A DNA stretch of 64,000 nucleotides, from positions 52,762,001 through 52,826,000 of the forward strand of contig NC_043007.1 of assembly GCF_006345805.1 (NCBI RefSeq), written 5' to 3'. The stretch is from Octopus sinensis. Lineage: Eukaryota. Numbering within the stretch: the stretch's first letter is position 1; each line of letters opens with the position of its first letter. This document shows, one piece after another, positions 7,840 to 59,275 of this stretch. Made by a program: the position numbers and the translations under genes. The notes below the pieces were generated by a model. It did no database searches. It saw only the letters and a program-made list of their open reading frames with translations, and was not told where the DNA came from.

Positions 7840-8422
7840 CAGTGGAAAGAAGCTGAGGAAGAGGTAGACCCAGGAAGACATGGAATGAGGTGGTGAAGCA
7901 TGATCATCAAACATTGGGCCTCACAGAGGCAATGACTAGTGACCGAGCCCTTTGGTGATATGCTGTGCTTGAGAAGACCCATCAAGCCAAGTGAAAGTAT
8001 TGTCATGGCCAATGCTGGAGTCACATAACTGACACATAAAAAACACCTTTTGAGTGTTGGGCCTCATCGAGGCAAAGTGGCTGATGCTGATGGCACATGA
8101 AAAGCTCCTTTCTGGGCCTCAGAGAGGCAATGTCAAATGACCAAGACCCTGGCAATATGTCGTGCTTGAGAAGAAGACCCATCAAGCCAAGTAAAATTAC
8201 AGTCATGGTAGATATTGGTGTCACACAAATGGCACCCATGCTGGTGACATGTAAAAAGCACCCATTACACTCTCAGAGTGGTTAGCGTTAGGAAGGGCAT
8301 CCAGCCATAGAAACAATACCAAATCAGGCTGGAGTCTGGTGCAGCCTTCCAGCTTGCCAGGCCTGGTCAAACCATCCAACCCATGCCAGCATGGATAACA
8401 GACATTAAATGATGATGATGAT
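7840..8422 (+). mobile_element. RTE LINE 3' end with (ATG)n tail
   Basis: ORF C-terminus, duplicated 3' module, shared tail motif ttaggaagggcatccagc...ccaacccatgccagcatgga and atgatgatgatga. The same tail recurs near 14460-14535, 23520-23680, 38160-38410, 43990-44295, 45130-45263, 46790-46985 (minus) and 63080-63150. Confidence 0.85.
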
Positions 8423-30899: not shown

Positions 30900-33800
30900 C
30901 CTTGTGTCAGAGTATGTTTTGCCCTGGGTGGTGATGTCTTCTGCAATACCACATATCATTAATCAGTATGATCCTTCATTATCTCCTCCATGAGAAATAG
31001 CATATTCAAGTCAGTTTTCACCTAAGTCTTCTTTGGCTTCCCTCTTGCACAGGTTCCACTAAGAGTGCTCAGTACTTCTTTATGCAGCATTCATCTTCCA
31101 TATTCATCACATACCCATACCAGTGCAGTATTCTTTCATGTAATTACACCTGATTCTTTTTGCAATTTTCTCTTTCATATGTAGTTTTTCTCTTGACTGT
31201 CAGACTATGCTCGTCTGATTTCTTTCAAGTCTTCTACATTCCAGGTCCACATTTCACTAGCATGCAACATTGGAGTTCTAACACACGCATCATACATATG
31301 TCCTTGACTTTGAGGAAGAAGGTCTTTGCTGCCAGCAAAAGCTCCCAGAAAATTTTTGCAGCTTGTTCTTACCCTTGATCCTATGCCTTTTCAACAGCCA
31401 TCTCCTTTGGTAATTATGTCACTTAGGTAATTGAAGCTATCAACTATTTCTAGCTGGGCATTTTAGAAAGTCTATCAGCATGCTCTTAGTATGTATTACT
31501 CCAGTGCATCTCCTACATACAAAGCTTGCCTTCTCTGTTAGCCTGCCTGCTACTCCACTATACCTTGTATGTCCATAACTTATACTGCATAAAGAGTCCC
31601 TATCTACACCTTCCTACATATTAAGTAAGGCCATTTCCCAGAAGATACCAGGGCCTTTCTTCTTTACTTATTAACACATTAATCTATACTAAGTTTACTT
31701 TGAGATCTCTCAATTCTAGATTTTGCTTCCATACTCACAATTTCTCCAATTCCACTATAGATTCAACAATAAGAACTAGATCATCAGCATATAGGATTTT
31801 CCATGGACAGCCAGTGTTAAACTTTTCTATGATGGCCTATAGGACTATGACAAATAGGAGAGGACTGAGAACTGAGATTTGAAGGACCCTTGCCTTCACT
31901 CTTAATTTTTAGCTGGACTCATTGTTGATCCTCACCTTGTACATAACTTGTAGAGCCCATCAAGACATTCATCTACATCTAGTTCCCTTAGTGACCATAG
32001 AGCATGGCACCCTATCAAAGGCCTTTTCCAAGTCAACAAATGCCAGGTAAAATGGATTAGGTAAGTATTTCTCCAGAAGTTGTCTCACTAGGAAGATGGC
32101 AGCTGTGTTACCTCCTCTAGGCATAAAGCCAAACTCCTTTTCATCTAAGCTAATTGTGTTCCAGTTAATTGTACAACTCTCTGCATAACCTAGTCCACAT
32201 TGATGCCTCAATGATTTCTTTGGATCTTTACCTTTTGACCGACAGATTTAAAAAATAATTTTTTGAAACTAAACACTTTCAAACTTCGGACACTGGTAGA
32301 ATGTGTCATATAAAACATCTTTTACTCTTAGCGTTTTTGAAAAAATGCTTATATTTAGGAAGTTATTTCATGTTAAAGTAGTTGTATTTCGGTAATTTCA
32401 ACCAAATCAATGACATGTATTCAGCTGAATAAAATTACTGCCATTGTTTGTCAACAACAACAATCGGCGGTGTATTTTTCATTTGTCACTGTTATTTATG
32501 ACATTGTTCGCATGTTTGTACTGGTTTTAGCTTTAAGGTTTTAGGGTTAGGGTTTTAGAGTTAGGGTGTTAGGGTTAGGATTAAGGTTTTAGAGTTAGGG
32601 TTGTCATAAATAACAGTGACAAACAAAATATACACCGCCGGAAGTTCTTGTTGACAAACAACAGCAGTAATTTTATTCAGCTGAATACACGTCATTGACT
32701 GGTTGAAATTACCGAAATACTTCAACTTTAATGTGAAATAACTTCTTAAATATAAGCTTTTCTCAAAAATTCTAAGAGTAAAAGATGTTTTATATGACAC
32801 ATGCTACAAGTATCCGAAGTTTGAAAGTGTTTAGTTTCAAAAAATTATTTTTTAAATCAGTCGGTCAAAAGGTAAAGATCCATTTCTTCTAAAGGATTTC
32901 CTTTAAACTTGTAGCAGTCAATATTTTGATCATCTCAGCTATTATCTCAAATGGGCCAGCAGCTTTCCCTGCCTTCATATCCTTAATACTTTGCCTATCA
33001 CATAGATGTCAACTTGAACTGCTGGTTCCTCTGTAGGTTCAGCATGTAGTAACCCCTCTTTATCCTATGCACTCTCCACATTCAACAACCTCTCATACTA
33101 CTACTTTCATACCTCTTGTCATCAGTAGTAACAGCAGGTGTACTTTTACGTAATTTCAAATACATTTCTTCCCAATGACATTTTACTTCTTTCTGATATA
33201 CTGTCTTGCAATCCTAGACACCTTAAGTGTCTTACATGACTTATATGGTTCTCATCAGCCTTTCATCCACTAGTTTCCACAGCAACCACCAGATCACAGA
33301 GTGAGGAACACTGTTAAAGGCGTTCTTCAGGTCAATAAATGCCAAGTACAATGGTTTACTCTTCGCTAAATACTTCTCTAGCAGTTGCTGTACTATAAAG
33401 AGAGCATCAATAGAATTTCTTGAAACCAAACTCCATCTCATCTAGGCTAACTTTCTCCCTAATTAATTGAGCTATAATTCTTTCAGTGATTTTCATGACC
33501 CAATCTAACCTCTGTGATTACTTCTCTCTAGGGCGTCTCCTTTACTTTTGTAACAGTTATCTATGCTGCTGCTACGCTAGTCATTGGGCATGATACCCAC
33601 CTGGACAATCTCATTTACTTCACATGTAACTAGGCTATATCTCATTCCAACAGATAATTTAAGCATCACAGTGTTAACTCCTGATGTACTAGGGGCTTTC
33701 CCAGTCTTCATATCATTAATTGCATTGTCTATCTCACTGCTGTCAACAAAAATGGCTGTTACTTCCACTCGATTCACATTAGGAAAACTCATTCTCCTAT

Positions 33801-48746: not shown

Positions 48747-51099
48747 CAGTTTCAAAAATTAAACAGGAGCACATCAAAGGAATAAACAAAAGATTTACAC
48801 ACAAGACATAGAACCACTGCTCCTCCTCTCCCTCTCAAATACTAACCCCATCCCACCATTTAGTCTTTTTATCCTTCCTGTTCTTCTTGGCAACCTCACT
48901 AGTGCTGGTGGTACAAAAGGGCAACCAGTAAACTCTATAGAGTGGTTCCTGGGTTACTGTATGCTGATGATCTTGCTCTCATAGTGGAATCTTTAACAAG
49001 ATTAGCATTCAAAAAATCATTACAATTTCATGCCTGTAACAATAAAATTGTTCATTTTTTGGTAGTGTCAAAAGTAACCAGCTGCTGGGAATAGTGAGCA
49101 AATGTTAAAAACAGTGATAAAAACAAACACAATACAGGTAGTGGGTGCAAATATAAATGTAAATATACAAAAAAAAAAAAAATAAATAATGGCGGTGCCC
49201 CAGCATGGCCACAGCTCATAAGCTGAAACTAGAATCAATCAATCAATCAATGAGCAGAAGAAAAAACAGCCATGTGATCTGAGACAAGACAATGTATGTA
49301 GAAGTAATGCAATGCAAAATGTCTGAAAGAACTGGAAATGGGATATCAGGAATGTTGACCAACAGAGGGATCTGTTATCCTAGTTGACAGCAGCATTATA
49401 GATAAGGCAATTAAGGATATGAAGACAGAGAAGGGTCCTGATCAAGTCGCCTGTATAGCTAATCAGGTTATATAAGATGTCATAGTGACTGGTGCAGAAG
49501 CATTATAGTCAACTGTTTACAAAGGCAAAAGGGATACTTTAGATAGACGTAATTATGAAGGTATCAAATTACTGAAACAGGTTATGGAAGTTATAGCCCA
49601 ATTAATTAAAAACACATTTAAACTAGATCTTGGTTTCATGCTGGAAAGTACAACTGACATATTCTTAGACAACTACAGAAGTATTTAGATGTGTAAACCT
49701 TTGTATTTAGCATTTGTTGACATGGAGAAAGCCTTCAACAGAGTCCCTTGCTCTGTGTTATGGTGGTCTCTGAGGAAGCTAGGAGTAGACAAATAGCTTG
49801 TAAAAGCCATACAAGGCATATACAGGGGTTCAGCTAGTAAGATAAGAGTTAGCTATAAGTTCAGTGATAAATTTTATACAGTGTACAAAGTGCAAGCTAT
49901 GGACACACAAGAGATGTAGTGGAATCAAAGGAAGGCTTACAGAGAAAATAGCCTTTGTATGTGGAAAATGTGCAGAAACAACAAACACTACGAAAATATG
50001 GAAAATAGATTTTCTGAAATGCTCTATTTTGTTTGTGGACCCCTTGAGAGCAATCTTATCATCTGTGGACCCCATATATACACATGCAAATTTTTGAAAT
50101 AAAATATTTGTTTGTAGGTTAGTAAAAACTAACAATGAAACAATTTCATTATATTTATAACACTAGCTGAAGGTGAGTGTGTGGTTATTACTTTCAGTTG
50201 CTTCCTTTCTATTTCTTATCACCACATTCTCCCTCTTGTTTGTCTCTCCTTTCTCAATTTCCACTCTCTTACTCTTCCTTTCTCTTGGACTCTTCTTCGC
50301 TTTCTCTTACTCTCTATCTTTCACTATCTATCTCTCGCCCATTTATAAAGAACAAAAGATCTTAAGTAAGTTGAGAAAGGAAATATTTTGAAAGATCAAT
50401 CATAAATATCAGGCAGTGACAACAGAAAGGTCTGTTTCAAGGTGGACAGCAAAACACTAACATTTAAAAGGGACAGACGAACTTGCGAGCTGAATAAAAC
50501 TTTAAAAAATATTGGAAACCAAAGTTTGAAGGGATAGAATCTGAGGATAATAGACTTGCCATGGCTGGCATTTCTTAACGATGGACAGCAACGTATTGAC
50601 AGTTTAACGGCTGGCTGAACTTTATGTAAAAGAAAATTCCTAAACACCAAGTTTTGAAGTGATTCTTTCTCACAACAGTAGACTCACAATGGCAGGCATT
50701 CAAAACTTCTTCATGACGGACGGCAACACATTGACAATTTGAAGGCTGGCGCAAATTTTTTAGCTTGATGTAACAGAGAATTCCTAAACACCCGCTCCTT
50801 TCAATTTTAATCCCCTTCCAGCCCCATTTAGACCCCTTTTCACATTTTGGTTAATATAACCCGATTTCATTTGGGTCTACTTGGGCCATATTTTAAAAGA
50901 TGAGGTATTTTGTCCTTAAGGAAAGAAAGAAGGAGAATTCAACGTTTCAAGTGGAGCTCTTCGTCAGAAATATAGGAAAAGGAAAGATTCAAGGAAGGGA
51001 AGACGGAGGAAAAAAATCGCCAACAGTACACACGCGGTCACATTTTGAATGACCGGAAAGGAATGGGTGAAGAAAAAGTGCTTTCAAAGACGGGAGAGT

Positions 51100-51983
51100 G
51101 CAAGAGAAGGAGGTATGTGTGTGTGTATGTGTGTAATGATAGCACGTGTGTGTGTGTGTGTGGTTGTGGCTGTTAATCTGTGTGTGGTTCTTGTGTCTAC
51201 CTACCCATGTGCGTAGAAGAATGGTCAGTGGAAGGTACTGGTAGTTTGAAGTATGTGCGTGTATGCATATGTATTGTGTGTGTGTTTTGTTTGTAGTGTG
51301 TGTGTGTGTATGTATGTGTTTGTGTGTGTATGCATAAAGGTTGTGTGTGTGGGGAATAATTGTGCTTTACTTTATGTATGTGTGCGTGTGTGCTTGTATG
51401 TGCGTATACATGTATGTATGAGTGTGTACTGTGTGTATAGGAGGTATGTGTGGGTTCATTTGTGTGAGTCTGTATGTGCGTATTGTGTGTATGTGTGTAT
51501 GCGTATGTGGCTGTATATACGTGTATCTGTGGGGTTGTGTGTTATTCGTGTGCGCATGTTTGTGTGCGTCTGTGTCTGTGTCTATATGTGTATACGTGTG
51601 TGTGCGCGTGTAAGCATATATTGTGTGTGTATGTATATGTGTGTATGTGAATTTGTGTATGTGTGTGTGTGTGCGGGTTGTGTGTGTGAGGGTTTGTGTA
51701 GGCGTAATGTGCATGCGTGTGCTTGTGTGTGTGTGCGTGTGTGTTTGTGCCCATGTGAGTATAATTGTGTGCGTGTCTGTATGTGTATTGTTTGTTGTAG
51801 GTATATGTGCGAACCTGTGCTAGTGTGTGTATGTATGTGTGTATATGTGTGTGTGCGAGTATTATGTGCATATGTATGTGCATGTGTGTATGTGCTTGCG
51901 TGTGTATATGTGCTTGCGTGTGTATATGTGCTTGCGTGTGTATATGTGTGTGTGAACGTGGAGATGTGTGTCAGGTTGTGTGC

Positions 51984-52021
<38 letters not shown>

Positions 52022-52084
52022 TACATACACGCTTTATATGTGTGTGTACGCATTGTATATACAAATTATATATATATAATATAT

Positions 52085-52140
<56 letters not shown>
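51100..52140. repeat. TG/TA-rich compound microsatellite
   Basis: Degenerate (TG)n followed by (TA)n. Other microsatellites: (TA)n at 20520-20665, (AAT)/(GAT)n at 12158-12215, (GATT)/(GATA)n at 34555-34655. Confidence 0.95.
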
Positions 52141-52141
<1 letters not shown>

Positions 52142-52454
52142 TACAGATATATACACTTTGTATATATACATTATATATACATATTTATATATAGACTAGC
52201 ATTAAAGACCCGTCGTTGCTGGGTCATAGTGCTAGTGCATATATATATGTGTATATATATGTGTAGATATTACATGTACATTTATATATATACATCTACA
52301 CATAAAATGCAAAATACAAAGTTATATCTTGATATCGCTAGTGATAACAATTCTCAAAATATATAACAAAATATATTGTTAGCCCATCTCTTGTAATTTT
52401 GCTCAATTGTATCTTGTCCTCTCTTTTGTATAGAAGTGTGGCCTACCTCATTTA

Positions 52455-52654
52455 AAATTTTTTTCCGGGACATCCTACGTCCCAGATATAATGGTAAAAA
52501 TAAAATATTTCCACTTTGCAAGTTTGAGTCGAGTACTCCCTTGCACGCTCCGTTGATTCGAACCTTGCTTCTATTGTGGCGAATTTACCGCCTCTGATTA
52601 GATATCTTTCATAAGTCGCACCAAGACACTTTTCGAGGGTGCTTTCCTCCATGT
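52455..52654 (-). pseudogene. Right half of a split, more distant ORF1 fragment (left half at about 56347-56412)
   Basis: MEESTLEKCLG...RGGKFATIEARF then, after a frameshift, LPLYLGRRMSR. Homologous to IEKCLG...RGKKYGTVEVR...WPSYKGRRGVR of the two inserted copies. Confidence 0.8.
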
Positions 52655-54563
52655 TGTTTTATTATTACCCACAAGGGGCGAACATAGATGGGACAATACA
52701 ATCGGGAAAATGAATAATGAATTATGAAGTTTGTACAATGTGGTGTAATGCCCACTCGATCCCCGAAATCGAGCGGTTACATTTCGTCATTTGTTTTTTA
52801 TTCGTCAACAATATTTTCCAAATAAAACATTTTATACATTTTCAACATACATTTCAAAAATTTTACAAAGTTCAACATTTTTTTTTTTCCAGAATTTAAA
52901 GTTCTTTTTATCATTTCCAAATTAAAGTTTTCACAATACCTTTTCTTTTATATATACTCCATTATCTCTACCAAATCTGAGTAAACTTCCATCGTTCGTG
53001 GCCACCTTGTAAGTCGGCATTTCATGTTTTGACACGTTCTTGCCAGCTGTCTCGATGAACGCCTCGGCGTCGTTCTCGTGGACGAGTGCACCTGTTTCTT
53101 TCCATTCGGTGCCCATCCTGACCCACGTATATCCGTTTGTTACGTTTATTAAATCTTCCATCTCCTCACAGTGCCTGTGATGGATCAACGTTCCATAGTA
53201 TTTGAATTTTCTATTCGTACCTACGTTTTCTCTAGTTTTTCTCTTAGGACTTACTTCCTCTTTTTTCTCCTCCCTCGGTTTCTCTTTCTCTCTTTTTGCT
53301 TTCTCTTCTTTCTTTTTCCTTCTCTTGTCTTTTTGGCTCTTTGTCTGCCGTCTCTCTACCCTGTGCCTTGAGTTCCTTTCCTGTTGTTTCTTTTCCTTTT
53401 TGCATACCATCTTTTCCTTTCTCTTGGTTCTGTTCCTTCTCTTGTTCTTTTCCTGCTTTTTCTCTTTCCTTTAATGTACTTTCCTTTTCTTTCTCTTGCT
53501 TCTGCCTTGGCTCCTTCTCCACTACTTCTGCACCCTGTGAATTTTGCTCCTTTTCTACTATCTTCTTCCCTTTGTTTTCATTTTCCTTCAGTGCGCTGTT
53601 ACTTCCCTTCTCTTGTTGTTTCTCCGTTATTTCCTTTTCCTTGTTTTCGCTGTTCTTTCCTTCGTGTTCGTTTTCCTTCTCTCCACTTTGTGTCTCTTTT
53701 TGCTCCGCTGTGAATTCATAGGGCGGACATTCCTTTTTTATGTGCCCTCTTGATCCGCACAGGTAGCAATTCGGTTTTCTGCCTTCCACTATTACACTAA
53801 TTGTTTTCTCGTTTTCTATTTCTATTTGGAAGGGAAATCTTTCGATGTCTTCCATTGTGGCCATCAGCCACAACTCTACTCCGAATCCCTTCCAATTTAC
53901 AACGTTGGTCTCCTTGATTGACCCTATTTCTACTTCCTCTTTTGTTGCCCCAATAATGGCTGTTACCAGCATTTCTGTTTTAATATCTGGGGGCACCTTT
54001 GGGACTCTTACCCGTACCCCTCGTCTTCCTTTATACGTCAGCCACATGGTGAAATTTTCCGCTTTCAGGACAGTGGAAGCCAATGAGGCCGCCACTTCCT
54101 TTGTTGCGCATCTCACCTCCACCGTACCATATTTCTTTCCTCTGTCTACAAAAGTCGCTTTTTTCATGATGTCCCCCAGACATTTCTCTATTTCTTCAAT
54201 CGTCACTCTCACCAGTTTTCTCGTGGTTCTATCTTGCGTTCTATACGTTATCGTCTTGTTATTTCTCTCTTCTATTGTTTCCACAGGCGGGACCAGCTTC
54301 ACGCTGTCACCCTCCCTTTTGACGAACTTCTCGTATTCCTTCAATTGTTCTTTTCTAAAGAACACTTCTCTTATTCTAAGAGACTCGTCACTTTTTGTTG
54401 TGGCGACCCCCGCGTAAGTCTCCATTACTTGAGGGTTGACACACCTTCTATAAAAGGTTCAAACATGCAGCGGCAAACGCCTCGCGTGATTCAATTTTTT
54501 GACAATTTTTAACAGTTTTTTTCCAATTTTCACATACAAAATAACTCACAACACACGTGGATA
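52655..54563 (-). mobile_element. ORF1-only L1/Tx1-like retroelement, copy 2
   Basis: Frame 54425-52931 with one frameshift (393-aa ORF plus the C-terminal part of ORF 52931..53410), CCHC knuckle CYLCGSRGHIKKEC, same 3' terminal motif as copy 1, and 14-bp direct repeats. Confidence 0.8.
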
Positions 54564-54577
54564 GATTTCCTCCATGT

Positions 54578-56346
54578 GATTTTATTACTACTCACAAGGG
54601 GCGAACATAGATGGGACAATACAATCGGGGAACTTAAAATAAGAAAGCGAATGACAAGAAAAGGAAAAAATAAAAGTAAAAATGACATATGAAAGAATAT
54701 TTACAATGAGATGTAAATGTCCACTCGATCCCCGGAATCGAGAGGTTACATTTTCGTCACATATATTTCACAAAATTTTCTTTTTTCTCTTTTTATTTTT
54801 TTTCTTCTCACAATTCTATACATACTCTATAATTGTTTCCACTTCGCTGAAGTCTAACACTGAGCCCTCAGGCAGCCGCTCTCTCACTCGAACCTTCGTG
54901 TAAAATATTACACTCTCTCCGGCAGCTCTGAGGAACTCAGCGGCTCTTTCTTCGGGGGATTAGAGCAGTCTCCTGCCACCGGTCGGTCATCCTGTTGACC
55001 CATATATGTCCCTCCGTTTCACTTGTCAAGTCTTTCATTATAGGGCAGAAATGGAAGGTTACTAACTTGTAGTAATAGTAATCTTGTTTCCGTCCTACGT
55101 TTTCCTTCATTTTCCTTTTCGGGCTTATTTCTTCCTTGTTCCCCTCTCTTTGTTTCTCTCTTTCTCTCTTTTTGCCTTCTTTTCTTTCTCCTTCCTTCTC
55201 TTGTCTTTTTGGTTCTTTGTCTGTTCTCTCTTTCTCGCGTGTTTTATGTTCCTTTTCTTTTTCCTTTTGTGTGCCGTCTTTTCTTTTCGTTTGATTCTGA
55301 TCCCTCTCTTGTTTTTTTCCTATTGTTTCTTTTTCCTTTTTTTTTTCCTGACTCTGTTTTGGTTCTATTTCTTTCTTTTCTTTTATTTCTTTTTCCTTCA
55401 TTGACTTATTATTTCCTTTCTCTTGTTGTTTTGTTTCCTTTTCTATGTTTTCTTTCTCATTTACAGTATTCTTCTTTTCTTCAAGTTCCTGCTTGCCCTC
55501 TGCTACGAATTCATATAACAGGCACTCTTTTTTAATGTGCCCCCTTGTCCCACACAAGTAACAGTTTGGTTTTCTCCCCTCTACAATTACGCTGAGGGTT
55601 TTTTCCTCTTCAATTTCAATTCTGTAGGGAAACCTTTCAATATCCTCTTTTGTGGTCATCAACCACAATTCTACCCCATATCCTCTCCAGTTTACCGCGT
55701 TGGACTCCTTAATTGATTCCACCTCCACTTCCTCTTCTGCTGCTCCTAGAATAGCTGTTGCCAGCCATTCTGTTTTCACTTCTGGGGGTATATTCGGGAT
55801 TTTAACCCGGACCCCTCTTCTTCCCTTGTATGAGGGCCACATTGTGAATTTTTCGGCTCTTAGTACGGTGGTAGCCAGAGGGGCCGCAATTTCTTCCGTT
55901 GCACATCTCACCTCCACTGTACCAAATTTCTTGCCTCTACTCACGTAGGTTATTTTCCCCATTATGTCTCCCAGACATTTTTCAATTTCGTCTATCTCCA
56001 CTCTTGCCAGTTTCTTCGTATATTTTTGTCTTGGGTTCTGTATGTCACCGTCTTGCTTTCTTTATCCTCTTTTGCTTTCGCGGGGGGGATTAGCTTCACG
56101 CTATCACCCTCCCTTTTGAAGAGCTTTTCATATTCTTTGAGTTTCTCTTTCTCAAAGAAAACCTCCTTTATGACTATCGACGAATCGTTATTTTTCCCGG
56201 TGACCCCCGCGTAAGTCGCCATGACTAGAGGGTCAATTCACCTTCTTCGGAAGGTTTCCACACGTGGAGGCAAACGCCTCGCGCGATATCAAATCAATTT
56301 ACACAGAAAAAATATCACCGTCTAGTCACAGATAACAACACACATA
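54578..56346 (-). mobile_element. ORF1-only L1/Tx1-like retroelement, copy 1
   Basis: One ORF1-like frame 56222-54816 with two frameshifts, CCHC knuckle CYLCGTRGHIKKEC, short 3' UTR with AATAAA, and 14-bp direct repeats on both sides. No endonuclease or RT sequence. Confidence 0.8.
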
Positions 56347-59275
56347 GCTTTCCTCCATGTGTTCAAATCTTTTTTCTCTACATTGTATACTTTATAGACA
56401 ATAGTCTTTTCTTTAATTTAATTTTTTATTATACATCTGGACTATTCCATTTCTGCACGCTAATTTTATTTTTAATTTATTTCCATTCATGTGAAACCAC
56501 TTATTCAAGTTCAAATCATAGATGCAAATTTATACCAATTGCTATTTTTACTTTTGTTATGTTACGATTATATTATACTTTAGTTTGATTTTAATTATTA
56601 CTTACTACATATAATTCAATTGTTATTATTATTTTTATTGTTAAAGTGAAAGCATCTGACATAAAATAGAGAAACGTTTTTGTTTCACTTTTAACACGTA
56701 ATACTGAAATAGTGGAGAAGATATGATATTGCTATGGGCTCGCTCTAGGCAAGAAGTTGAACATTTTTTTTGCCTATGAAACTACATGGACCCTAAGTAA
56801 GACATGTGTAAAATTTGAATGAAATTGGTTGTGTAGTTCTCAAGTTTTAGGGAAACACACAGACAGATAGACACACATTCTCAGTTTTATATATATAAAG
56901 ATACACACACACATATATAAATTAACCCAATAAATATCTGATTCATAATATTTGTTCTCATGATTGTGTGGTGGTGGTGGTGGCGATAATAATTTTCTCT
57001 ATGAATGCAGACAGACATACAGAGAAAGAGAGGGAGAGAAAGAGTGACAGAGCTGGCGAAGGTGGCGGGAGAAAGAGAGTGGAAGTTGTCAAACGTTGTT
57101 ATAGATCGAAAGTGAAGGGAAGAAAGTGAGAGAGATGGAGGAAGAGGGGCAGGTGTGCGAAAGAGAAACGGCAATTCATAATATTTGTTCTCATGATTGT
57201 GTGGTGGTGGTGGCAATAATTATTCTCTCTATGAATGCAGACAGATGTAGAGAGAGAGAGACAGACAGACAGATTATGTGGGAGAAAGAGTGACAGCACT
57301 GACAAAAGCGGCGGGGAAAAGATAGTAGTAGCTGTCAAATGTCGTTATAGAGAGAAAGAGAAGGGAAGGGAGGAAAGAGAGAGAGAGAGACGGCTGAAAA
57401 CAGGCAGATAAGAGAAAGAGAGAAACGACAAACACTTGTCAAAGTGTGGGTTTTTTTGGCCTAGTAACCACAGCTTTTGAGATAGGGATTTCTATCCTAG
57501 TCCACTCACATCCTCACCTCTTTTTACATGTCCCTGTAAATTTTGGAGCGTATCCCACAGGATCTAGTGCCCTTTCACCCGTTCCAATGCCAAAACCAGA
57601 CAAACAAACAAACTTTTCGCATTTCAGATTTATAATATAGAGAATAAATTCCAAATACAAATCTTGAAAATTTCAATAAATACAGGTACCTCCCCTAGTA
57701 AACAAAATTTATATATGGACCCACAAATTACAATTTTTTACTCGTGGTCCACCTTAAAGCTTCTGTGGACCCCTGGCGGTCTATGTGGGCCTCAGTTGAG
57801 AAACTCTGCTCCAGAGGCTCCCTGATGGTGGTAGATAGTTTCTGCTACCTGGTGGTGGTAGATAGTTTCTGCTACCTGGTGGTGAAGGATTATCCAAAAG
57901 AACAGTTGCTAGAATAAGAACAGGATGGAGAAAATTCAGAGAGCTATTACTCCATCTAGCAACAAAAGTTGCAGGGTGAACGTCAGCCAGTATGATGCTT
58001 GAATATGAACTTCAATGCTACATAGTAGTGAGATATGGTAGTGAGTGCAGAGGACAAATAAAGACTAGAGAGGAATGAAGCTCGTATGCTGCATTGAATG
58101 TGCCATATTGGTGTGAATATATGCTGAAGTGCTAATGCACTGAGCGGAAAAATTATGCATAAGTGGTATCAGATGTAGTTTACAAGAGAGAAAACTGCAC
58201 TGCTTTGGTCATGTGATGCATATGGATGAGAACAGCTGCATAAAAAAGTGTTAGTTGCTTAAACTGGATGATAAGAGGAGACCCAGAAAGACATGGAATG
58301 AAGTAGTGAGGGCTCGAGATATTGAACCGCATGGAGGAAATGATAGAGGATCAAGATGATTGGCAATTTGCTGTGCTTGAGATGACCTACACATAACAGA
58401 AAATATGTCCTAAAAGCATTTTTCTATGCTTGGATAACATGATGGACGGTGTCCCTACACCCTATCAAGCATTTGTCACATCTCATCTCTCTACCAACCC
58501 TCTTCCATACAAGCTGAGCACAAGTATTTCCCACACCATCTACCAGCCCACTCATGTTGGGTTTAGTAATTCCCACATTTCTTTTTCCTATCTATTACCC
58601 TTACCCATGTTCTGGGCACTGTCCCTACACCTATATTGCTCTGTCAAGCACATCCCACATCCCAACTCCCTACCCACTCCTCCTATAACAATTGTCCCCC
58701 TTGACACATATTATATCCACTAACACCTTGTCAAATCAATTTTGAATTTGGATCTTTTGATTTAACATTCTTCAGTGTAAGGGATAAATTTTTCATAATT
58801 TTACAACACAATATTTCATTTAATGTACACTTTCATAATATATCCACTTAAATTTTTGTATTCAAACAATGCTTTCATCGCAAAAGAGGTTATATATCTA
58901 ATTAAGTTTATTGGTAAACAAAAATATTTCTGATTTTCTTTTGAACCATTTCACTTTTAAAGCCTTTTGATAAAAACAACATTTAAAAAATTTTTTTGAA
59001 GCATTACCTTATGCTTAACTGTTTGTAACTTATCTAATAAATAATGTGAAATAAAAGCTACAATGTCATAGCTATAACCTGTAAACTCAAACCTAAACAG
59101 GACAGGGGTGTGTGCTAAAAAGTAACCTAAAAAGTTCACATTGGCTATGTATGTTGTGTTCTCAGCTGATATAAGAAATAAGTCTAATTGCAAATAGAAG
59201 AGTTGGAGTCAGAGTCGATTGTAACATAAATAGAGGGGTCAGAATGTAAAAATGAAAGGAAAAAACCCAACTTAC

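Follow-up and report, generated by a model that had tools for sequence, protein, structure and literature searches.

R1 and R2 in 28S rDNA and TRAS and SART in telomeric repeats are site-specific long interspersed nuclear elements (LINEs) whose targets are multicopy safe harbours. In the Tx1 clade the target can be another transposon: Tx1L inserts into the DNA transposon Tx1D of Xenopus, other Tx1 families insert into long terminal repeat retrotransposons or Harbinger elements, and in crocodilians Tx1-Mar and its SINEU partners insert into Mariner-N4_AMi, in two preferred regions without recognisable similarity (Kojima 2015, PMC4494074). Tandem insertions of Tx1-Mar sandwich a target-site duplication, and some of them carry target-derived heads (PMC4494074). 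Mammalian HAL1 ('half-L1') encodes only the protein of open reading frame 1 (ORF1), needs the ORF2 protein of an autonomous LINE and, as summarised in PMC5753468, arose more than once (Bao & Jurka 2010). Here we describe a system of this kind in a stretch of 64,000 nucleotides from Octopus sinensis (contig NC_043007.1, positions 52,762,001 to 52,826,000; hereafter the window), where two ORF1-only elements, unit A and unit B, are inserted into one copy of a dispersed repeat, the host repeat. We consider it likely that the two units, which belong to different families, homed sequentially to a fixed nucleotide of this relic repeat and were copied in trans by a partner LINE. The type of system is itself known; new are the LINE-relic target, the several diverged, coding ORF1-only partner families, and the long ordered arrays.

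Judged by mode of insertion and not by reverse transcriptase (RT) phylogeny, the octopus system appears to be matched most closely by the target-specific LINEs of the Tx1 clade. As with Tx1L and Tx1-Mar, a LINE with an apurinic/apyrimidinic-type endonuclease (APE) and a CCHC-containing ORF1 is found at a defined position of a multicopy transposon, and non-autonomous partners share its target; as with Tx1-Mar, one target element offers two preferred positions, a target duplication is sandwiched between insertions, and there are target-derived 5' heads. Unlike with Tx1L and Tx1-Mar, the octopus target is the ORF1-derived part of a related LINE relic and not a DNA transposon, and unlike those of Tx1-Mar, the octopus partners are not short interspersed nuclear elements but coding, ORF1-only elements of 1.8-1.9 kb, forming long, ordered arrays that reach at least 7 members. 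The units resemble HAL1 in having ORF1 without ORF2 and in sharing their 3' end with the partner LINE. They differ from it in that only the last ~50 nt are shared with the LINE, in that their ORF1 is ~35% identical to that of the LINE and has an extra C-terminal domain of ~100 aa, and in that at least four to five diverged families (A, B, C, D, E) coexist and are target-specific. A multicopy safe harbour, a precise 3' junction and the use of target transcription or target-derived ends are features held in common with R1, R2, TRAS and SART; unlike theirs, the octopus target is a retroelement relic and not a host gene or telomere. The endonuclease is of the APE type, as in R1 and TRAS, and not restriction-like, as in R2.

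In the window, units A and B lie head to tail on the minus strand, from 56346 down to 52653, and a 12-mer, ATGGAGGAAA(G/T)C, is present on that strand in three copies, one ahead of B, one separating B from A and one following A. The first-pass annotation of this DNA had proposed restoring the target by removing both units and one repeat copy; because there are three copies, two units and two copies were removed instead. The flanks then read ..KTIVYKVYNVEKK(R)FEH MEES TLEKCLGATYERYLIRGGKFATIEARFESTERAREYSTQTCK.., and the rejoined peptide matched the ORF1 of unit A with E=8e-7 and that of unit B with E=2e-7, at 28-36% identity. Against P0007, a full-length ORF1 from an O. sinensis LINE, the match had E=2e-19, with 43% identity over 80 aa, and was colinear across the insertion point; for this comparison two frameshifts, one in an A run and one after STQTCK, were mended conceptually. 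After the second frameshift the match runs on through LPLYLGRRMSR (SGNILFLPLYLGRRMSR versus AGNLVLLPLYKGRRTSK) to ~52430, past the ~52460 at which homology had been thought to end. The relic comprises ~80-100 codons, equivalent to P0007 residues ~89-187. No ORF1, ORF2 or DNA similarity to the family was detected in the rest of the 1.07-kb repeat, and DNA-level comparison of the host repeat with units and LINEs gave chance-level matches only, the kinship being visible at the protein level alone. On this protein-level evidence, the target does lie in the ORF1-derived sequence of a related element, as had been claimed.

The same rejoining bears on what the insertions did to their target. They had been described as disrupting a relative, but with two frameshifts and only ~80-100 ORF1 codons left in a ~1.07-kb relic, the target is not a coding, potentially active element, and nothing functional was disrupted. 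The inserted copies had also been said to lack the target, and this holds: an 18-mer, CACATGGAGGAAAGCACC, searched for with up to three mismatches, was found in the window and at eight other loci at junctions only, and never inside a unit or LINE body. The proposed avoidance of self-insertion does not follow from it, since the ORF1 of the units is 28-36% identical to the relic and a missing 14-mer is expected from divergence alone. A 13-mer, CACATGGAGGAAA, with at most one mismatch, occurs four times in the window versus 0.14 expected (0 of 100 shuffles reach four), and three of the four matches fall exactly on unit boundaries. The fourth near-match, CGCATGGAGGAAA, lies at 58328-58340 on the opposite (plus) strand, away from the units.

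The region from 52195 to 56902 (minus strand) is one copy of the host repeat, ~1.07 kb, interrupted by the units. Ten further loci (L001-L010) were fetched via proteins of the element family. The host repeat is present at eight other O. vulgaris loci, and 9 of the 11 element-bearing places looked at, the window included, are in this one repeat; the target element is a dispersed multicopy repeat, and of the earlier suggestions that of a multicopy safe harbour is the one that fits. Its upstream flank lies directly upstream of arrays at six loci (L001 and L007, both on OX597814.1; L002, OX597820.1; L004, OX597821.1; L009, OX597816.1; L010, OX597833.1), with 91-96% identity to the window by BLASTN and 91-97% pairwise identity over the last 260-480 nt. 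The downstream flank follows the arrays, at 89-95% (BLASTN), at L002 (12232-12440), L004 (14343-14571), L005 (16429-16613) and L009 (16617-16825). Between insertion point and downstream flank, piece X is 83-84% identical at L005 (16114-16421) and L009 (16302-16609) and is absent from the host copies of L002, L004 and L010. Two kinds of copy can thus be told apart: host-1, which keeps X (window, L001, L005, L007, L009), and host-2 (L002, L004, L010), which is without ~300 bp, from ..AAAAAAGA to ..GAGATGG. Because homology ends at the same two boundaries, the host is a discrete repeat of ~1.07 kb. (TA)n or TA-rich sequence is found at the boundaries of most copies, except on the 5' side of L007 and the 3' side of L005, and at L002, L004 and L009 the downstream flank is followed by (AT)n.

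In all five host copies with the ORF1 piece, B, A or a 5-kb LINE with APE and RT domains sits at one and the same nucleotide, site a; insertion is thus site-specific and not scattered, as had been anticipated. With a slash marking the junction, the 3' end reads tail..AAC/ATGGAGGAAAGCACC (tail AACAAC/ATGGAGGAAAGCACC) in the window (unit A), L005 (LINE) and L009 (LINE), and the 5' end reads ..TTTGAACAC/12-mer in the window, L001, L007 and L009. The three host-2 loci are occupied at another position, site b (..AACAT/TCCAGTCT..), where the LINEs are accompanied by a 14-bp duplication, TCCAG(T/C)CTGTTATA. The end of X in the window, GGGCTAACAATATATTT, is a degenerate equivalent of this second site, GCTAACAAT/TCCAGTCT. 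A target duplication of 10-13 bp is sandwiched between units; the 3' junction is precise, and 5' junctions vary. The occupants are B, A and X in the window; B, LINE and X at L009; at least six B, LINE and X at L005; three B and LINE at L007; at least seven B at L001; two A and LINE at L002; A and LINE at L004; and E, B, A and LINE at L010. The order is constant, ORF1-only units being followed by the 5-kb LINE and then by X and/or the downstream flank, and the architecture of upstream flank, units, LINE, X and downstream flank recurs on OX597814, OX597816, OX597820, OX597821 and OX597833.

Insertions at different loci appear to be independent events. The LINEs of L002 and L004 are ~19% different in their 5' halves and have the same 14-bp duplication; they are therefore separate insertions. 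Subfamily B1 offers the clearest case: across L001, L005 and L007 its units show 98.4-99.8% identity, where the host flanks differ by 4-5%. Because near-identical units sit in host copies that differ this much, the B1 insertions are independent, and they post-date the divergence of the host copies. Arrays also mix subfamilies, and neighbouring junctions at L005 carry different filler.

Several observations weigh against the reading of sequential homing to a fixed nucleotide. All comparison loci were found via element proteins, so that occupancy was guaranteed by ascertainment, and no empty host copy is among them; a search of 5.8 billion proteins with the 66-aa flank peptide, made to find empty host copies, gave no candidate. 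The family also occurs outside the host repeat, at L003, L006 and L008, and the specificity is a strong preference, not an absolute one. At L003, a unit A copy 98.4% identical to that of the window is inserted at ATTAAGGGAGACCC, where a 69%-identical LINE encodes the C-terminal region of its ORF2; the copies of L006 lie in unrelated O. sinensis sequence, and those of L008 in another context. The arrays with identical junctions (L001, L006) probably grew by local duplication and not by repeated insertion. In the upstream flank, the host copies that lack X form no cluster of their own. Finally, the 7-8-nt filler between the duplicated target and the 5' body follows site type and not family, which simple target-primed reverse transcription with non-templated filler does not explain: at site b it is TCAT(T/C)G(A/C)G for A, B and E, and at site a TAYCCAC or TATGC.

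The L003 locus has some further features. A third ORF1-only family is found ~20 nt from the unit A copy. When the 75-nt context of site a was scanned over four LINE copies, the best matches fell elsewhere, and the notion that the third site, at L003, resembles site a was dropped. Elements of L003 outside the host repeat (minus strand 4219-3900, and 8390-8420) carry host-derived leaders: a LINE has TTGAACACATGGAGGAAATC (TTGAACACATGGAGGAAATCAATTTTTT), made up of 8 nt of host flank and the 12-mer, and the unit A copy has AGAAATCTACCCAC; such host-derived 5' leaders indicate that transcripts start upstream of the element, in the host.

The first-pass annotation had also proposed the 14-mer as the endonuclease target. 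Upstream in the arrays, the 12-mer takes locus-specific forms: ATGGCTCCAAGC before B and LINE at L009, GTGTCGGAAATC seven times at L001 and (G/A)TGTCTGAAATC at L007, with ATCGAGGAAATT also among the reused 12-mers; next to X it stays ATGGAGGAAAGC. Altered 12-mers were therefore still targeted, and the sharing of locus-specific variants across families is the pattern predicted by successive duplication of the flank-proximal copy. The youngest units (B1) adjoin the upstream flank. At L005 and L009 an intact site-b sequence, GCTAACAATTCCAGTCTGT(T/A)ATA, lies downstream of X without any insertion. The same sequence is occupied in host-2; there X is missing, and 11 nt separate the sequence from the end of the same upstream flank. 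Since 12-mer variants are tolerated, a different sequence is used in copies without X, and arrays are extended at their 5'-most copy, what is recognised is probably not the 12-14-mer but sequence upstream of the nick. Both sites have AACAY just before the nick, and the final tail base depends on the site (..AAC or ..CAC at site a, ..AAT or ..ATT at site b), consistent with base pairing between the nicked target and the 3'-terminal ..AAAACAA of the RNA. We give about even odds to a rule in which the upstream flank is recognised together with AACA microhomology. The idea of two endonuclease types serving the two host sites was rejected: whichever site a LINE copy occupies, its APE domain shows 91-94% identity to that of the intact O. 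sinensis copy, the ORF1 being the divergent module. This uniformity, too, argues against the 12-14-mer as the main determinant.

These observations can be combined in a tentative mechanism. The endonuclease would nick the target behind AACAY, the distance to the conserved end of the upstream flank being fixed, and the 3' end of the element RNA (..AAAACAA or ..AAAATCA) would pair with AACA at the nick. The shared tail presumably lets the machinery of the LINE recognise the units and copy them in trans, through target-primed reverse transcription. In the window, units of two families were probably inserted one after the other at ..TTTGAACAC/ATGGAGGAAAGC.., unit A most likely first and unit B after it. 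Each new insertion would enter the 5'-most target copy, so that arrays grow toward the upstream flank and the order (E) B, A, LINE results, and transcription of an element could begin in the host repeat, a few nucleotides before the element itself.

Units A and B can be aligned end to end, with 80% column identity (MAFFT) and ~70% identity over the body (BLASTN), and their last 54 nt are near-identical: CCCGATTGTATTGTCCCATCTATGTTCGCCCCTTGTG(G/A)GTA(A/G)TAATAAAA(CA/TC)AC. Each contains a single, gag-like reading frame and encodes only an ORF1-like protein, with an RRM-like region, a CCHC knuckle, a K/E-rich tract and a C-terminal domain; in unit B, the frame is shifted near codon 75, and the knuckle, the K/E-rich tract and the C-terminal domain are all recognisable. 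PF00098 scored 23.4 bits on unit A and 22.8 bits on P0009 (curated cut-off, 20.8); on unit B and the LINE ORF1s it stayed below the cut-off, yet CX2CX4HX4C is present. The C-terminal domain of ~100 aa is conserved in the ORF1-only units (52931-53251 of the window, minus strand, and the C-terminus of P0009), and the LINE ORF1 is without it; Pfam gave no match to it, and an AlphaFold2 model from a 6-row alignment had a mean pLDDT of 56.8, too poor for a fold search. Protein relatives of the unit ORF were all from Octopus vulgaris or O. sinensis, O. vulgaris giving the closest hits, and exact look-ups of the window ORFs (393 aa, 66 aa) for an orthologous or allelic locus returned no record. Unit B is 97% identical to units 2-3 of L007 and 90-93% to other B units, and unit A is 98.4% identical to the L003 copy and 95-96% to those of L002, L004 and L010. 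Coordinates are given in Table 1.

Table 1. Features of the occupied host repeat in the window
Feature	Position	Strand	Remarks
Host repeat 5' part (upstream flank)	56359..56902	minus	~540 bp
Upstream part of ORF1 relic	56359-56415	minus	..KTIVYKVYNVEKK, A-run frameshift, FEH; ends TTTGAACAC before insertion point
Target copy 1, ATGGAGGAAAGC	56347..56358	minus	target-site duplication upstream of unit B
Unit B, ORF1-only non-autonomous element	54576..56346	minus	1771 nt
Unit B ORF, frameshift-split	55992-56222 and 54937-56001	minus	preceded by 5' UTR
Unit B 3' UTR hairpin	54713-54750	minus	
Unit B shared tail	54576-54629	minus	
Target copy 2, ATGGAGGAAATC	54564..54575	minus	between unit B tail and unit A 5' end
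Unit A, ORF1-only non-autonomous element	52653..54563	minus	1911 nt
Unit A ORF	53244-54425	minus	393 aa, with CCHC knuckle
Unit A C-terminal domain	52931-53410	minus	shifted frame; frameshift in K/E tract
Unit A 3' hairpin	52744-52781	minus	
Unit A shared tail	52653-52706	minus	
Target copy 3, ATGGAGGAAAGC	52641..52652	minus	native; continuous with downstream ORF1 relic, codons M-E-E-S
Host repeat piece X	52369..52640	minus	downstream relic TLEKCLG...STQTCK, frameshift, SGNILFLPLYLGRRMSR, ending near 52430, plus ~60 nt
X-proximal context sequence			GCTAACAATTCCAGTCT
Host repeat 3' part (downstream flank)	52195..52368	minus	ends ...GGGTCTTTAATGCTAGT, then TA-rich simple sequence

The ratio of nonsynonymous to synonymous substitution (dN/dS) of the unit ORF was 0.08-0.15 between families A and B and, over the whole ORF, 0.16-0.32 within families, values that show purifying selection. 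Many near-identical B1 units (L001, L005, L007) share a frameshift in the C run after ..KLIPP; this frameshift, at 55992-56010 in the window, splits the ORF into pieces of ~50 and ~380 aa, and the frameshifted form has itself spread between loci, a caveat to be set beside the ratios. An Rfam scan of the whole window, made for ribozymes or other RNAs at the unit ends, found no family at gathering score; no hammerhead or HDV-like ribozyme, as known from ribozyme-bearing tandem retroelements (retrozymes, Penelope-like pseudo-LTRs, the R2 5' HDV-like ribozyme), was found at the unit boundaries. A thermodynamic test for a structured 3' tail gave non-significant z-scores (0.09, -1.05, -0.52), only the local hairpin of unit A (Table 1) standing out.

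ORF2 of the LINE family was found neither in the units nor nearby nor elsewhere in the window. The partner endonuclease assumed in the first-pass annotation is thus absent from the window, and present in the 5-kb LINE at other loci. In this LINE, ORF1 contains a CCHC knuckle, and ORF2 contains APE, RT and zf-RVT domains (PF03372, PF00078 and PF13966 on the ORFs of the L002 LINE); the O. sinensis copy at L006, with an ORF2 of 1133 aa, is apparently intact, and its relatives carry the same domains. Units and LINE share only their last ~50 nt, which are 88-100% identical between A or B and the LINEs of L002-L010; unit and LINE ORF1s are only 35-40% identical. On an origin of the HAL1 type, from the partner LINE by loss of ORF2, the observations point both ways: the ORF1s are homologous, though at this low identity, and the units have a C-terminal domain not found in the LINE ORF1, whereas L006 holds a direct ORF2-deleted derivative of 3.57 kb. 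We conclude that the units are non-autonomous partners that keep an ORF1 of their own. Among named relatives of the LINE, the best were L1-like proteins of teleosts and plants; an identity of 21-32% to these does not tell L1 from Tx1. A PDB sequence search with the LINE ORF1 returned zinc-knuckle matches only. Compared with the O. sinensis copy, LINE copies of L002-L010 are mosaic, the ORF1 core being 68-78% identical and the APE, RT and C-terminal parts 91-98%; the LINE ORF1 looks like a fast-evolving or exchanged module.

An explanation near to that of the first-pass annotation is that the endonuclease recognises the 12-14-mer, (AC)ATGGAGGAAAGC, itself, and that the elements parasitise a relative's ORF1 and escape self-insertion by ORF1 divergence. 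It would account for the conservation of the native copy beside X in the window, L005 and L009, for the absence of the motif from units and LINE bodies, and for a site inside ORF1-derived sequence. We nevertheless regard it as unlikely, because divergent 12-mers are reused, host copies without X use a wholly different sequence (TCCAGTCT..), and a unit family 98.4% identical is found also at ATTAAGGGAGACCC in L003; moreover, the host ORF1 is a short, frameshifted relic in which nothing was disabled, and at 28-36% protein identity the absence of the 14-mer needs no selection. RNA-guided homing, in which transcripts begin in the host repeat or run on into it, a host-derived leader or trailer pairs with other host copies and a lineage inherits the site of its parent, seems to us very unlikely: window unit A (site a) and the L003 copy, which occupies another site, are 98.4% identical, implying fast site switching; no 3' read-through sequence was seen beyond the tail; and within one array, locus-specific 12-mer variants are common to different families, a sign of in-place duplication. 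Consistent with guidance by RNA are the host-derived 5' leaders carried elsewhere in L003, the 5' filler that is site-type-specific across families with one APE type serving both sites, and the second-site A copies, which form their own sublineage (96-97% among themselves versus 95-96% to site-a and site-c copies).

More improbable again is the making of whole arrays in single events, the RT jumping from the 5' end of one template to the next tail, with the LINE RNA first by cis-preference. The LINE is indeed always the 3'-most member, all members share a tail that the RT would recognise, and at L006 tails join 5' ends directly, without a target copy. However, every array junction in the host repeat holds a 12-mer copy, with locus-specific variants; members of an array differ in age, B1 being 98-100% and B2 ~97% identical between loci; and the array of the window is without a LINE. 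The least probable alternative in our view is a composite of host repeat and array that formed once, spread by segmental duplication or retrotransposition, and later underwent unequal crossing-over. The order (E) B, A, LINE is constant everywhere, the LINEs of L005 and L009 are 95.8% identical, close to the 93.6% of their hosts, the three host copies without X share an odd junction, TCCAGTCTTCATTGAG, and L001 has runs of near-identical units with identical junctions, and these speak for it; but homology stops at the boundaries of the host repeat, B1 is 98.4-99.8% identical across loci whose host flanks are 4-5% apart, neighbouring fillers differ at L005, the LINEs of L002 and L004 are ~19% apart in their 5' halves, and the 12-mer variants are locus-specific. 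Sequential homing with copying in trans remains our preferred reading. A bolder version of it, which we put forward tentatively and hold to be rather doubtful, would make the relic a landing pad: its upstream flank would direct the nick, the 12-mer being dispensable, and would supply or position the transcription start, LINEs and ORF1-only families would compete for it, and arrays would record the order of arrival.

The system contributes a molluscan case to the few LINEs known to home to another transposon, and the question of target choice that it raises matters for how LINE endonucleases acquire specificity and for designing site-directed retrotransposon vectors. With an apparently intact O. 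sinensis copy (L006), selected ORF1-only partners and natural target variants, the rules of target choice by an APE-type LINE become testable; the 12-mer variants and the second site made by deletion separate the contributions of upstream and downstream sequence. The arrays also explain tandem "uncharacterized protein" gene models in octopus assemblies.

The origin of the host repeat can be considered from its ends and content. The ORF1 relic lies ~540 nt from the 5' end of the repeat, which fits the length of the 5' UTR plus ORF1 N-terminus of the L006 LINE. We infer that the host is an internally deleted, decayed relative of an L1/Tx1-type LINE that ended in or targeted (TA)n, and the (TA)n bounds seen elsewhere too suggest that it targeted TA microsatellites. 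Directly past the 3' end of the repeat in the window there is a (TG)n-like and then (TA)n-rich tract (51100-52190).

Two loci outside the main comparison contained related material. At L006 (4508-21353 of CM016867.1), the apparently intact LINE is followed by at least three tandem 3.57-kb derivatives without APE and the 5' part of RT; all junctions are identical, with tail AATAAAACA/GATTATTTGATG and no target copy between. At L008 (9200-14800 of OX597818.1), partial host-repeat fragments and an ORF1-only family, the fourth, with ~69% identity to both A and B, lie between two haemocyanin genes; the junction sequences there are different. The window also contains two unrelated RT fragments, at 31738-32193 (minus strand) and 48942-49094 (plus strand), in one case a 26% match to the LINE ORF2, in the other an ORF with a YADD motif; neither is a partner of the units. 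Just outside the 5' boundary of the repeat, at 56941-57400, ~235 bp are imperfectly duplicated in tandem, and segments of the duplication are 76-100% identical.

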